Positions 48,304-52,237 of a stretch of 64,000 bases of DNA are shown one piece after another. Location of the stretch: the sequence record LR756502.1; one strand, given 5' to 3'. The notes under the pieces are model-generated. The model was not told the origin of the DNA. It was given only the letters and a program-made list of their open reading frames with translations, and did no database searches. The translations under genes and the position numbers were made by a program. The first letter of the stretch is position 1, and each line of letters opens with the position of its first letter.

Positions 48304-48625
48304 AATAGAAATACTTGATGCTACTATCAAAAAGGCCGAGATGGATGAACATAATCTTGGGTGGAATGATGACTATGAATATGGTATGGAGAATGATTAT
48401 GATGATTGGGATGACCCCTATTACTGTTGTGAGTCTTGTACCCCAAGATTTCCGATGGGTGGGTTGGATTACGAATATGATATGTCAAAGTCCAACAAAG
48501 ATGGTAGAATGATTGACCTTGATTCCATTTCAATATCTAGAAAAAGAAACTCAATAATAGATAAAGTTCTTGGCGAACAAGTTGGAGTAACAACAATAGG
48601 TGATGTTATAAATGCAAAGCTATAG
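48284..48625 (+). CDS. Acidic hypothetical protein with tail variant
   Basis: D/Y-rich, CCESC; KRNSIIDKVLGE. Confidence 0.7.
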   Translation: MSHKKNKIEILDATIKKAEMDEHNLGWNDDYEYGMENDYDDWDDPYYCCESCTPRFPMGGLDYEYDMSKSNKDGRMIDLDSISISRKRNSIIDKVLGEQVGVTTIGDVINAKL

Positions 48626-48863
48626 TAAATTCAAATATGGTGAAATTGCCGTTCTTAGAAAGGGATATGCTATTACTGGTATATATGTTATGGTTGGTGT
48701 AAAATTTGATTCAAAGACACATTGTAAGAGAAACCCGTCAGTAATATCATATTATATTGAGGGATATCCAATTAGAAATTGGTGTTATGAAGAGGAGTTG
48801 AGAAGAGTAAATATTCTAAGTAGATTAATAATCTATCTATTTAAAATTAAAAGTAGGTTTTAA
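48612..48863 (+). CDS. Hypothetical protein
   Basis: 83-aa ORF, operon-coupled. Confidence 0.6.
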   Translation: MQSYSKFKYGEIAVLRKGYAITGIYVMVGVKFDSKTHCKRNPSVISYYIEGYPIRNWCYEEELRRVNILSRLIIYLFKIKSRF

Positions 48864-48867
48864 TTAT

Positions 48868-48938
48868 GGTTGTGTGGCCGAGATCTTAGGCACACCTTCG
48901 CAAAAGGTGGTACGGTATTTAGTTGGTATCCACAACCT
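48868..48938 (+). tRNA. tRNA-Cys(GCA)-like gene with degenerate T-loop
   Basis: Acceptor GGTTGTG/CACAACC, D-arm GCC/GGC, anticodon stem CACCT/AGGTG with loop TC-GCA-AA, discriminator U; T-loop TTAGTTG, no encoded CCA. Confidence 0.75.
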
Positions 48939-48973
48939 CAATTTCAAAAGTTATAGAATCGTTCTATATCAAT

Positions 48974-48992
48974 ACAAACCATCGGTTTGTTT
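48974..48992 (+). terminator. Possible weak terminator after the tRNA-like gene
   Basis: ACAAACC-ATC-GGTTTGT-TT. Confidence 0.4.
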
Positions 48993-49010
48993 AACTTAAA
49001 CAATTAAAAA

Positions 49011-49421
49011 TTGAAGAAGAATAATAAAAAATTTGAGAAGATTAGAAATTGGATAGAGGATAAAGGTTATTCTGTGAGATTTGGTTCTTATGATTGTGTT
49101 GATTATGCAACGAAAGAGGTTGTTATCTATAATAACAGATATAGTACAAAGCATCTTATATATTCAGCACTTCATGAATGTGGTCATGTTGTGTTAGGAA
49201 ATAGAGATAACTATTGTAGAGACTTTAAGTCTATTATCAAAGCCGATAGTGTTGATGGTCGGCATTATCGTAGTAATCTCTATAAGTATAAAAAACTAAA
49301 AGAAGAGATTGATGCATGGGAAGAGGGGTATACTTTATCTAAACAACTTGATATAAAGATTGATAAGGATGATTATGACCATTATGCAGCAAGGAACTTC
49401 ATTACATATGTGAACAATTAG
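49011..49421 (+). CDS. Zincin (HExxH) metallopeptidase-like protein
   Basis: TTG start; YSALHECGHV and downstream EEIDAW. Confidence 0.7.
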   Translation: MKKNNKKFEKIRNWIEDKGYSVRFGSYDCVDYATKEVVIYNNRYSTKHLIYSALHECGHVVLGNRDNYCRDFKSIIKADSVDGRHYRSNLYKYKKLKEEIDAWEEGYTLSKQLDIKIDKDDYDHYAARNFITYVNN

Positions 49422-49471: not shown

Positions 49472-50113
49472 ATGATGAACTACGACTCTTATAGATACAT
49501 CTATCCACCACGTCCAAAAAATGCAATACCATCTGATGAATTATCTGTTTGGGATAATGATACACTCATAGGTCAACCAAAATTAAATGGATCTAACTGC
49601 GTTATTTTCACTAATGGTGAAAGATTCAGAGTAATGAATAGACATGATCAAACATTAACCAACTTTCGTATAAATACTGATGAAATACTTAATATATACA
49701 AGTGTAAGAAAGGTGAATGGATGGCTATCAATGGTGAATATATGAATAAGTCCAAAATGGATGAGAGTGGTAAGGTTTTTAACCACAAGTTTGTTATTTT
49801 TGACATCCTTGTTCAGGATTCTAAATATTTGGTTGGTAGTACGTTTGAGGATAGAATACTTCTAATGGATGATCTTTATAATACCAAAGATTCTGATAAG
49901 GATTATCTTTATGAGATTTCTGAAAACATCTACCGAGTTAAATCGTATAATAACAACTTTAAATTTATTTTCGATAAATTAACACCAATTGATATGATTG
50001 AGGGTTTGGTTATGAAAAGAAAGAATGCTAAATTGGAGCTTGGATCTACTGAGAATAATAATATTAAGTCTCAGATTAAATGTAGGAAGGCTACTAAAAA
50101 TTATAAATACTAA
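49472..50113 (+). CDS. ATP-dependent ligase-type nucleotidyltransferase (adenylation domain only)
   Basis: Motif I QPKLNGS, III INGEY, IIIa VIFDIL, IV EGLVMK, V IKCRK. Confidence 0.8.
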   Translation: MMNYDSYRYIYPPRPKNAIPSDELSVWDNDTLIGQPKLNGSNCVIFTNGERFRVMNRHDQTLTNFRINTDEILNIYKCKKGEWMAINGEYMNKSKMDESGKVFNHKFVIFDILVQDSKYLVGSTFEDRILLMDDLYNTKDSDKDYLYEISENIYRVKSYNNNFKFIFDKLTPIDMIEGLVMKRKNAKLELGSTENNNIKSQIKCRKATKNYKY

Positions 50114-50419: not shown

Positions 50420-50992
50420 GTGGAAAAATTCTCCAAATTAAAACCAAAAGATGAATTCTCTGATAGTAAAGATGAAGTCTTATATACTGATAATAATATA
50501 AAAATTGTAAGCTATGAAGATTGGTCGGTTATAGAAGAGAAAGATACAATTGTTTGTATACCATATCTAATAGAGACGAATCAAATTATTCTAAGATATG
50601 AATATATACCTCCTTTTAAGATGGCCGATGGTCAAGAGTTTCATATAACTGTTCTAAGTGGTAGTGTTGATAGAGGAGAGTCAAAGGAGAGATGCCTACT
50701 TAGAGAATTAGAAGAGGAAGCTGGAATAATATTGAGAGATGGATTTAACATAGAGTTTATGAATCCTTTGTTCAAGACAAAGGCACATAATAACAAATAC
50801 TATCCTTGTATTATTACACTATCTGAGAGTGATTACCATGAGGTTATGGCTAAAGGTGATGGTACTAATGCTGAAGGTTTGAGTAAGTCAGTTAAGGTTG
50901 ATGTTAAGCACCTTAACTCACTGAATCCATCAGATCTAATAACAGACTACATGTTGGGTAAAGTTAAAAAGTATATAAATCAAAATCAATAA
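50420..50992 (+). CDS. Nudix hydrolase (ADP-ribose pyrophosphatase-like)
   Basis: GTG start; SGSVDRGESKERCLLRELEEEAG. Confidence 0.82.
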   Translation: MEKFSKLKPKDEFSDSKDEVLYTDNNIKIVSYEDWSVIEEKDTIVCIPYLIETNQIILRYEYIPPFKMADGQEFHITVLSGSVDRGESKERCLLRELEEEAGIILRDGFNIEFMNPLFKTKAHNNKYYPCIITLSESDYHEVMAKGDGTNAEGLSKSVKVDVKHLNSLNPSDLITDYMLGKVKKYINQNQ

Positions 50993-51042: not shown

Positions 51043-52107
51043 TTAAATTTTTGAAAGTAATTCCGACTTCTTAGTATTAAACTCATCATCTGTTAAGATA
51101 CCGGCTGAATGTAAATCAGCTAGTTTTTTAATAAGTTCAATAACATCATCAGATTCTCTCACTAGGATATCCTTTAGGTTTATTTCCCCGGTCTTTTTAT
51201 TAACAATATCTTTTGTTTCAACTGGCTTTCTACTATTTGGAAGTATCTGTAAAATTGTACTTGAAATATAGTTAGTATCAAAGTCCATATCTATCTCACT
51301 GAATACTTGTGAAGACGATTCTCCTTTTTCAACTCTACCTGTTTCAATGGATGAAATCGGAGTTGTGTTTGAGATATTTTGGAAGGAATTACCAGTATTA
51401 TTTATTGTCAATCCACTTAAGTCTACTCCAGAAGTATATGAACAATTAACAGAGTCCGATGAATACATAGATGTGTTGTATGTTCCTGTTGTTGTGGATA
51501 AGGAACTTAACCCACCACTTATAGTAGTTGTGCAATTTCCATTAGATAAGGAACTTAACCCACCACTTATAGTAGTTGTGCAATTTCCATTAAATATACC
51601 AGAAGTACTACTTCCACAAGTAATAATTGTTCTATATGGGTAGTAATGATTGTAATAAGGGTAATAGTCATAATGATGAACATGTACAACCTTATTGAAC
51701 TTTTCTTGCCAGTTATGAATTGTCACAACTGATTCTTTATAGAAGAATACTTCTAATAATCCGTTGTTTGTAGTGGCATCCGCCGATTCAATAGTGTTTT
51801 CTACCTCATAGGTGCTGAAGATAAACTTCTTTTTATCATCTACAAAGCAGTCAAGATAGAATCTTTGACCTGGTTTAAGTACTAGTCCAGTTTTAGAAAT
51901 GGATTGTCCATTAAGTTTAATATCACACAACACACACTCTTTAAGTGGATTATACAACTCGATTTCGAACTCTTGTTCGTCATCTAAGTAAACTTTACCT
52001 TTTTTGATTGATTTTCTTCCTTTATCGGAAGGTTTTGATTTGTCTTGTTGATTGTTTACAACAATGAACGCTTCGGGCTTTGCCGAGCTTGTAGTTTTTG
52101 CTACCAT
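51043..52107 (-). CDS. Hypothetical protein with low-complexity S/T/G linker and C-terminal SHOCT domain
   Basis: Start moved to MVAKTTSS; FEIELYNP, GLVLKPGQR, IETGRVEKG; IELIKKLADLHSAGILTDDEFNTKKSELL. Confidence 0.8.
   Translation of the reverse strand: MVAKTTSSAKPEAFIVVNNQQDKSKPSDKGRKSIKKGKVYLDDEQEFEIELYNPLKECVLCDIKLNGQSISKTGLVLKPGQRFYLDCFVDDKKKFIFSTYEVENTIESADATTNNGLLEVFFYKESVVTIHNWQEKFNKVVHVHHYDYYPYYNHYYPYRTIITCGSSTSGIFNGNCTTTISGGLSSLSNGNCTTTISGGLSSLSTTTGTYNTSMYSSDSVNCSYTSGVDLSGLTINNTGNSFQNISNTTPISSIETGRVEKGESSSQVFSEIDMDFDTNYISSTILQILPNSRKPVETKDIVNKKTGEINLKDILVRESDDVIELIKKLADLHSAGILTDDEFNTKKSELLSKI
51497..51592. repeat. Perfect 48-bp tandem duplication
   Basis: GATAAGGAACTTAACCCACCACTTATAGTAGTTGTGCAATTTCCATTA x2 (NGNCTTTISGGLSSLS). 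Confidence 0.95.
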
Positions 52108-52237
52108 AGTAATTCTTTTTATTTTTATCCTACATCTTTGAGTCTTATTCAAACTCTCAACGATATCCTAAAGATACCCGACATAAGTTAGCGAACAGCT
52201 ATAAACTATATATCAAGGTTATATTGGTCCCTTTTTA

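Follow-up and report, generated by a model that had tools for sequence, protein, structure and literature searches.

An atypical tRNA-Cys(GCA) gene with remodelled loops in a ligase-linked family of Mahaphage-type huge phages

The 64,000-nt stretch of phage DNA analysed here (the window) contains an atypical tRNA-Cys(GCA) gene at 48868..48938 on the plus strand. The gene spans tRNA positions 1-73 and was delimited from the sequence itself, its minimum free energy (MFE) cloverleaf, the mitochondrial mode of ARAGORN (-mt), the covariance models R1 and R2, and counts of paired stem positions. It is a member of a family of tRNA-Cys genes that belongs to Mahaphage-type huge phages and usually lies just upstream of a small ligase-like gene. 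In this family the cloverleaf, the GCA-A37 segment and the discriminator U73 are under purifying selection, whereas position 33 and both the D and the T loop are unconstrained or evolve fast. Such a conserved family with variable loops suggests a tRNA that is specialised for a task other than routine translation. The copy in the window is probably a functional member of the family and not a decaying pseudogene.

The window is 100% identical to LR756502.1, the record of an uncultured phage of 642,428 bp (W01 in the following; record coordinate = window coordinate + 248,000). This genome is among the four largest of Al-Shayeb et al. 2020, falls in the Mahaphage clade and has a predicted Bacteroidetes host; the tRNAs in that study were called by tRNAscan-SE with the bacterial model (PMC7162821). 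The second genome used for comparison, W02, is the relative LR745206.1 (634,780 bp), while L-numbers denote individual loci, including those from IMG/VR. The public runs that hold the locus of the window are freshwater and lake metagenomes, with no RNA runs among them. Contigs from a run of another study show 0 differences over 48724-48874 and 48897-49047. This agreement between independent studies means that the odd T arm stems from neither an assembly nor a sequencing error, and the latter explanation, which the preliminary description had allowed for, can be set aside.

The tRNA gene occupies a gap of 147 nt between small ORFs that are densely packed in a row on the same strand, in DNA of approximately 31% G+C. 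The upstream ORF (48612..48863, plus strand, 83 aa) was taken from the ORF list, has no Pfam or PHROG match and stops 4 nt before the tRNA. A promoter scan returned promoter-like sites at chance level, and no terminator was called by a terminator scan. Two inverted repeats can be read between the tRNA and the next ORF, namely UAUAGAA-UCG-UUCUAUA at 48952-48968 and CAAACC-AUC-GGUUUG, followed by UUU, at 48975-48989. Both come from reading the sequence and were left uncalled by the terminator scan.

The candidate is 71 nt long. Its acceptor stem (GGUUGUG/CACAACC) consists of seven Watson-Crick pairs and is followed by U8 and G9. The D stem contains three pairs (GCC/GGC) plus G13.A22 and carries a 7-nt D loop, AGAUCUU, that lacks G18G19. 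The anticodon stem (CACCU/AGGUG) has five pairs, and its loop UCGCAAA provides C33, the anticodon GCA and A37. After a variable region of 4 nt, the T stem (GGUAU/GUAUC) includes G50.U64 and U53.G61. From the T54-Psi55-C56/A58 signature, the T loop UUAGUUG has kept U54 and U55 alone, with A56 and U58 in place of the other two residues. The discriminator U73 is followed by CAA. All 20 modelled stem pairs are standard, with 0 mismatches; the single-sequence MFE fold is the cloverleaf, yet its z-score is just -1.8 against shuffled sequences. The preliminary description was thus right about the 7-bp acceptor stem, the 5-bp anticodon stem, the GCA anticodon and U73, and equally about C33, the two G-U pairs in the T stem and the T-loop sequence. 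It had also called the D-arm normal, which does not hold for a D loop without G18G19.

When compared to the canonical bacterial tRNA-Cys (RF00005), the candidate has the same GCA anticodon, U73 and A37, the same stem lengths (7, 5 and 5 bp in the acceptor, anticodon and T stems) and the same 4-nt variable region. It differs by C33, the absence of G18G19, A56, U58, U53.G61 and a G15:C48 combination where the canonical molecule has G15:G48. The identity set of the E. coli cysteinyl-tRNA synthetase (CysRS), as reportedly established in the work of Hou and Schimmel, consists of U73 and GCA.

Standard tRNA finders do not recognise this gene. ARAGORN in bacterial mode reports 0 tRNAs across the whole 64-kb window. 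Scoring by this program had been proposed as a check, and the candidate is called solely at 70% thresholds (-ps70) or in mitochondrial mode, which names it mtRNA-Cys(gca) and places it at 48868-48939. The Rfam tRNA model (RF00005) does not match it at the gathering threshold (29 bits), nor even at E<=10. A different picture is obtained with models built from the family. The covariance model R2 was trained on six family members at the Rfam gathering level (33.6-57.5 bits), the tRNA of W02 and the canonical tRNA-Cys of a 735-kb phage, leaving out the candidate and its three closest kin with the same odd loops. With R2, 48868-48938 is the sole match in the 64-kb window (61.5 bits, E about 3e-14), and the three other odd-loop sequences are recovered as well (58-69 bits). 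The family covariance model R1 scores the candidate at 89 bits.

At the syntenic site of W02, upstream of the homologue of the ORF at 49472-50113, lies a tRNA-Cys(GCA) that is ARAGORN-positive and scores 47 bits with Rfam. Copies in IMG/VR were first found by pattern scans, after which a profile of the ligase-like protein delivered 57 IMG/VR loci. In 17 of these 57 (14 distinct sequences), R1 finds a tRNA upstream of the ligase-like gene on the same strand. With the window and W02 included, the linkage is present in 19 of 59 loci and absent from 40 of 59; for 17 of the tRNA-less ligase loci, there was no match even with the filters off. Since ligase loci without any tRNA match exist, the linkage is frequent and not obligate. 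An 890-nt contig from a lake sample aligns to the 5' 60 nt of the candidate with 12 differences; its sequence after that resembles the 3' end of the family and hints at one more lineage.

Other searches were less productive. The IMG/VR pattern match L045 was rejected as a family member, being a chance match in GC-rich DNA. A pattern scan of metagenomes returned nothing but an unrelated canonical tRNA-Cys in 44%-GC contigs. In a scan of genome contigs the pattern was too loose: 0 of 80 loci among the matches listed fit R1, a result that has no bearing on cellular genomes. A blastn search with the tRNA against the phage collection returned the window's own record alone.

The genes that separate the tRNA from the ligase-like gene differ between the members. 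L044 and L078 have none. W02, L041, L043 and others have a Pol-beta-type nucleotidyltransferase, to which L068 adds an HExxH ORF; the window has an HExxH ORF alone. Relatives in which a gene intervenes have the next start codon 12-17 nt 3' of the tRNA. By eye from the translations, a small YqeY/GatB-like ORF follows the tRNA in L084:727-2464 and L097:767-1171; in L084 an ORF resembling S-adenosylmethionine synthetase comes next, ahead of the ligase gene.

The preliminary description had placed the gene just upstream of zincin and ligase genes, which is correct, and this linkage recurs among the relatives. The intervening ORF of the window (49011..49421, plus strand, 136 aa) is "zincin"-like: it contains an HECGH motif and has a weak match to a metallo-protease in PHROG. 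A homologue with 49% identity occupies the same position in L068. The ligase-like ORF (49472..50113, plus strand, 213 aa) was annotated with Pfam, PHROG and AlphaFold and comprises the adenylation (nucleotidyltransferase) domain only. It displays ligase motifs, with Pfam RNA_ligase and DNA_ligase_A_M barely above the cut-off and the PHROG annotation "RNA ligase". Its AlphaFold model (pLDDT 93) lacks an OB domain and best matches the adenylation domains of ATP-dependent DNA ligases (E about 1e-9, TM 0.6-0.7), with no RNA ligases in the top 50 structure matches. The sequence profile gives weak matches to DNA ligases, capping enzymes and a Naegleria RNA ligase. Assignment to the known RNA-repair ligases is not supported, the fold being closest to the adenylation domains of DNA ligases; for this reason the locus is not called a tRNA-repair island. 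Genes for ligating tRNAs that were cleaved by host defences have been noted in the huge-phage paper (PMC7162821).

Further downstream, a NUDIX hydrolase ORF (50420..50992, plus strand, 190 aa; Pfam NUDIX) is the conserved downstream member of the module, with homologues 3' of the ligase gene in L002, L041 and L043. The same-strand row is broken downstream of the NUDIX gene by a 369-aa ORF with a C-terminal SHOCT domain at 51043-52152 on the minus strand. The nucleotidyltransferase of the relatives has a Pol-beta fold and weak matches only, to TM1012, JHP933, ANT(2'') and MenT. No homologue of it was found anywhere in W01, an empty search result that is no proof of absence.

The family can be read as an experiment in which the stems were conserved and the loops released. 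In the 18 distinct sequences, 99.7% of the 360 stem cells are standard pairs. Covariation in relatives, proposed earlier as a check on the gene, is evident: double (compensatory) changes occur at 15 of the 20 pairs, and the alignment has a covariation score of 0.62, compared with 0.18 for shuffles, 0 of 500 of which attain it. In controls with slid partners, pairing falls to 32-53%. G34, C35, A36, A37 and U73 are invariant in 18/18, while the anticodon stem that flanks this segment differs at every pair across the family.

The loops behave differently. At position 33, 11 of the 18 sequences have C, six have U and one has A, and only two have kept the GG of the D loop. The T loop occurs in 14 versions, from the canonical UUCGAAU via UUAGAAU, UUAAAAU and UGAAAAU to UUAGUUA and CUUGUUA; three members contain TGA at T-loop positions 54-56 (G55). 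W02, L044, L091 and W03 have a canonical T loop, and several members have a canonical anticodon loop and reach 50-57 bits with the Rfam tRNA model. What had been described as a destroyed T-loop is rather one state in a family in which the T loop, the D loop and position 33 all vary and the elements relevant for CysRS are fixed.

Two possible couplings within these variable regions are suggestive, though neither stands out from its controls. C33 is accompanied by a Watson-Crick-capable 32:38 combination (U:A, A:U, C:G, U:G) in 10 of 11 cases, and U33 or A33 by C32.A38 in six of seven. The hypergeometric p-value of this association is 0.0025, uncorrected for relatedness, and the pair test of 32:38 itself is marginal against the controls. 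Most members combine A56 with a U-rich D loop, while L041 and L047 have U56 and an A in the D loop. The columns 19:56 can pair in 12 of 18 sequences (U:A in 10, A:U in two); this level is reached by 11 of 500 shuffles, and slid controls score about the same. In these 12 of 18 sequences a U:A or A:U pair might stand in for the G19:C56 pair of the elbow, with the shuffled and slid controls lying close.

In the ligase phylogeny, whose large tree is a quick tree only, the T-loop types do not form clades. In this quick tree, the ligase genes of L064, L066, L067 and L070 are approximately 0.04 substitutions per site apart, and their tRNAs differ markedly in the D loop, the anticodon stem and the T loop. 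Similar ligases with dissimilar tRNAs imply that the tRNA gene is either exchanged between genomes or evolving very fast.

The invariant anticodon also bears on a reading in which no aminoacylation takes place. The cloverleaf could serve as a tRNA-like processing or structural mark in the operon transcript that is cut by RNase P or RNase Z, thereby separating or stabilising the flanking mRNAs. Its position would suit such a role: it is wedged between same-strand ORFs, begins 4 nt past the upstream stop and, in relatives with an intervening gene, is followed by the next start within the 12-17 nt given above. Conserved stems and a conserved trailer are likewise what the processing enzymes need. 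A mark of this kind would, however, leave the invariance of G34-C35-A36-A37 and U73 unexplained in 18 sequences across which every pair of the anticodon stem varies, and we regard it as improbable.

The 3' end of the gene is shared with the other tRNAs of the phage. A CAA trailer (48939..48941, plus strand) follows straight after the discriminator and CCA is not encoded, as a comparison with the array tRNAs made clear. W01 has 43 well-paired array tRNA genes, and CCA is encoded in none of them; 35/43 have a CAA trailer and 6/43 have CUA, and CUA or CAA is also found in the relatives of the family. The earlier remark that the 3' end reads UCA rather than UCCA is therefore true and describes the ordinary state in W01. 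Because the trailer is the same as that of the array tRNAs, the RNA would be expected to enter their maturation route. A gene similar to CCA-adding enzymes (PF01743) is present elsewhere in the W01 genome. A search of W01 for a CysRS gene found none, so charging would need the host enzyme.

The phage does possess a second tRNA-Cys. The candidate was at one point considered the sole tRNA-Cys of W01, as ARAGORN had found none in the arrays; this was abandoned when a full-model search located an array tRNA-Cys at record positions 402192-402274 (L035:1693-1775), with U33, the T loop UUCAAUC and a D-loop GG. W02 contains an array tRNA-Cys of the same kind at 388655-388737 (L060:1501-1583). Both contain an extra hairpin of approximately 12 nt inside the D loop and are misread as tRNA-Val by relaxed ARAGORN. 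In the 735-kb relative, the only tRNA-Cys is fully canonical and unlinked to the ligase homologue. The 262-kb contig of L043 has 23 Rfam tRNAs, and no tRNA-Cys was detected there besides the odd one. The L071 contig (IMGVR_UViG_3300034013_000869; 175,660 bp, 85% complete according to CheckV) yields 0 Rfam tRNA matches at E<=0.001; it keeps the odd tRNA-Cys-like gene, adjoining the nucleotidyltransferase and ligase genes. The tRNA content of L043 and L071 points to a role other than completing the tRNA set.

Some peculiarities were observed in the remaining tRNAs of W01. U33 is present in 45 of the 46 other tRNAs, tRNA-Pro(UGG) at L036:632-705 having C33 as well. An AUCGUUA-type T loop, in which A54 and U58 represent the usual T54-A58 pair in swapped form, occurs in 9 of 46 array tRNAs (L034-L036, record about 389-423 kb): Glu-CUC, Ala, two Val, Ile-GAU, Thr-UGU and three Asp. 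In the arrays L033-L037, many tRNAs that are not class II (Lys, Glu, Gln, Thr) measure 80-89 nt, which suggests insertions or introns, and ARAGORN assigns a 2-nt "anticodon" to L037:602-675.

The D loop AGAUCWU and the T loop YUWGUUR are common to the window, L043/L075, L071 and L041/L067, and a comparison of tRNA sequences likewise places the window with L043, L071 and L041. This subgroup has, besides the D-loop GG, also lost the T54-A58 and C56 signature. Because L043, L071 and L041 have the odd D and T loops too, these are older than the lineage of the window. In the window and two other odd-loop lineages, 60 of 60 stem cells pair, with double changes at 8 of 20 pairs. Judging from four sequences, C18:G57 and W19:W56 could form two Watson-Crick pairs in this subgroup, a hypothesis for how its elbow might be held together. 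The preliminary description had considered a canonical T loop in the relatives, together with a silent copy here, as a sign of a simple pseudogene. This holds in part only: such a loop does exist in W02, L044, L091 and W03, and others share the odd loop.

On this basis the pseudogene question can be weighed. The window copy might have become redundant with the array tRNA-Cys and begun to decay in a family that is functional elsewhere. It is the sole member with U53.G61 and also has G60; the nucleotidyltransferase gene that lies between the tRNA and the ligase-like gene in nine examined relatives is gone here; a canonical tRNA-Cys is present at 402192-402274 of the record; and the general tRNA finders fail on the candidate. 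On the other side, its 20 stem pairs are all intact. Position 6:67 is U:A in the window against G:C or A:U in the other ligase-adjacent members, and 53:61 is U.G against G:C in all 17 others; both are two-sided changes that restore pairing, a pattern unlike neutral decay. The odd loops predate the lineage and are found in three other lineages with compensated stems, the CAA trailer is intact and is that of the phage's array tRNAs, and the sequence is identical in a sample of a second study. Decay of the window copy, one of the two readings offered initially, is accordingly judged very improbable. Some relaxation in the genome of the window is conceivable, given U53.G61 and the lost nucleotidyltransferase.

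If the gene is functional, its role has to be sought in what was kept and what was changed. Our preferred reading is that of a functional, loop-remodelled tRNA-Cys whose most likely role is that of a "hardened" spare tRNA-Cys; taken as a whole, with the role included, this statement is tentative and held at somewhat less than even confidence. The RNA would be transcribed within the gene row and excised like the other tRNAs of the phage. CCA would be added by the CCA-adding enzyme of phage or host, and the host CysRS would charge the RNA via GCA and U73. The changed parts, namely the geometry of the anticodon loop (C33, a pairable 32:38) and the D/T elbow, would be those that are read by the ribosome, by tRNA-targeting host nucleases and by modifiers. 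The spare tRNA-Cys could then survive an attack on the canonical tRNA-Cys, at some cost in decoding efficiency. It is the combination of the altered anticodon loop and elbow with the retained, conventional array tRNA-Cys that makes the hardened spare the most likely role. We know of no tRNA-Cys nuclease in the predicted Bacteroidetes host, and this counts against it. A tRNA-Cys-specific nuclease, VapC4, does exist in bacteria (PMC13096801), and there is a precedent for phage tRNAs that evade anticodon nucleases by loop mutations (PMC10264068).

The same features should, however, impair ribosomal use: C33, a Watson-Crick-capable 32:38 and the loss of G18G19, C56 and A58. A non-translational role would agree with them no less well than a hardened spare. 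The RNA could be a dedicated non-ribosomal tRNA-Cys or a decoy that is recognised by CysRS, or by a host enzyme specific for tRNA-Cys, and not meant for decoding. It would supply or carry Cys for a phage enzyme or, being uncleavable, titrate away a defence protein that targets tRNAs. What is fixed in the family is the CysRS set and the stems; what is free is U33 and the G18G19/T54-Psi55-C56/A58 elbow, which the ribosome needs. The association of C33 with a pairable 32:38 (10/11, at the uncorrected p given above) points in the same direction, as does the coexistence with a conventional tRNA-Cys in W01 and W02. The gene also recurs beside putative enzymes, namely the HExxH protein, the Pol-beta nucleotidyltransferase, the ligase-like adenylation domain and the NUDIX hydrolase. 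The G55 of three members is, moreover, a change at the same position as in the staphylococcal tRNA-Gly, where the T loop has TGC or TGT (PMC7826273).

Other observations fit less well. No Fem, L/F-transferase, cyclodipeptide synthase or PEARL-type transferase was recognised among the neighbours. A stable enzyme partner would be expected to fix the loops, yet these vary among close relatives. Finally, because several members combine a canonical anticodon loop with 50-57 bits in Rfam, the family as a whole looks translation-competent. A dedicated non-ribosomal tRNA or decoy is thus possible and rather doubtful. The same low confidence applies to its more specific form, in which a tRNA-Cys freed from ribosomal constraint and still a CysRS substrate works in a counter-defence or Cys-transfer module with the HExxH, nucleotidyltransferase, ligase-like and NUDIX genes. 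The RNA of such a module would correspond, in a phage, to the non-proteogenic tRNAs of Staphylococcus, or would act as a decoy that a host nuclease specific for tRNA-Cys cannot cleave. As far as the sequences go, the pattern of fixed CysRS elements and variable loops fits the specialised-tRNA readings in general, whether decoy, nuclease evasion or Cys donor.

Similar departures from the standard tRNA are known from other systems. In phage tRNAs that escape nucleases (van den Berg et al. 2023, eLife, PMC10264068; PMC11555353), as in the candidate, the anticodon and identity elements are kept and the anticodon loop is changed beside the wobble base. Like them, the candidate coexists with conventional tRNAs, and in one relative the odd gene is the sole tRNA detected. 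Unlike them, it has a remodelled D/T elbow as well, to the extent that tRNA finders fail on it, and its escape would be putative. In Staphylococcus a non-proteogenic tRNA-Gly takes part in cell-wall synthesis; its T loop has changed from TTC to TGC or TGT and position 19 is U or D (PMC7826273). Both this tRNA and the candidate are extra isoacceptors beside a normal one, without the TTC signature of the T loop or G19. The staphylococcal tRNA-Gly is charged by the normal synthetase, keeps U33 and has known Fem transferase partners, whereas the candidate has C33, no transferase was recognised among its neighbours, and the loops of its family are hypervariable rather than fixed. Tolerance of a cloverleaf without the G18G19 or T54-Psi55-C56 consensus is also seen in the tRNAs of the metazoan mitochondrial type; in contrast to these, the candidate comes from a phage of bacteria and the other tRNAs of that phage are mostly canonical.

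Atypical and defence-evading phage tRNAs as such are already known. Within the collections searched, what appears to be new is a coherent family of ligase-linked tRNA-Cys genes that can dispense with U33 and the whole elbow signature, with a subgroup that is invisible to standard finders and with a conventional tRNA-Cys in the same genomes. As the standard finders miss the candidate and several of its relatives, the tRNA counts of huge phages are underestimated. The family represents a natural experiment in which U33, G18G19, C56 and A58 are expendable, while the stems, the anticodon and the discriminator are under selection. Should the RNA prove to be charged and active in decoding, it would be a test case for phages that harden their tRNAs against the tRNA-targeting immunity of the host; a charged RNA that ribosomes do not use would be the first non-proteogenic tRNA from a phage. 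In either case, the recurrent linkage offers a candidate RNA partner for a ligase-like module that consists of an adenylation domain only.
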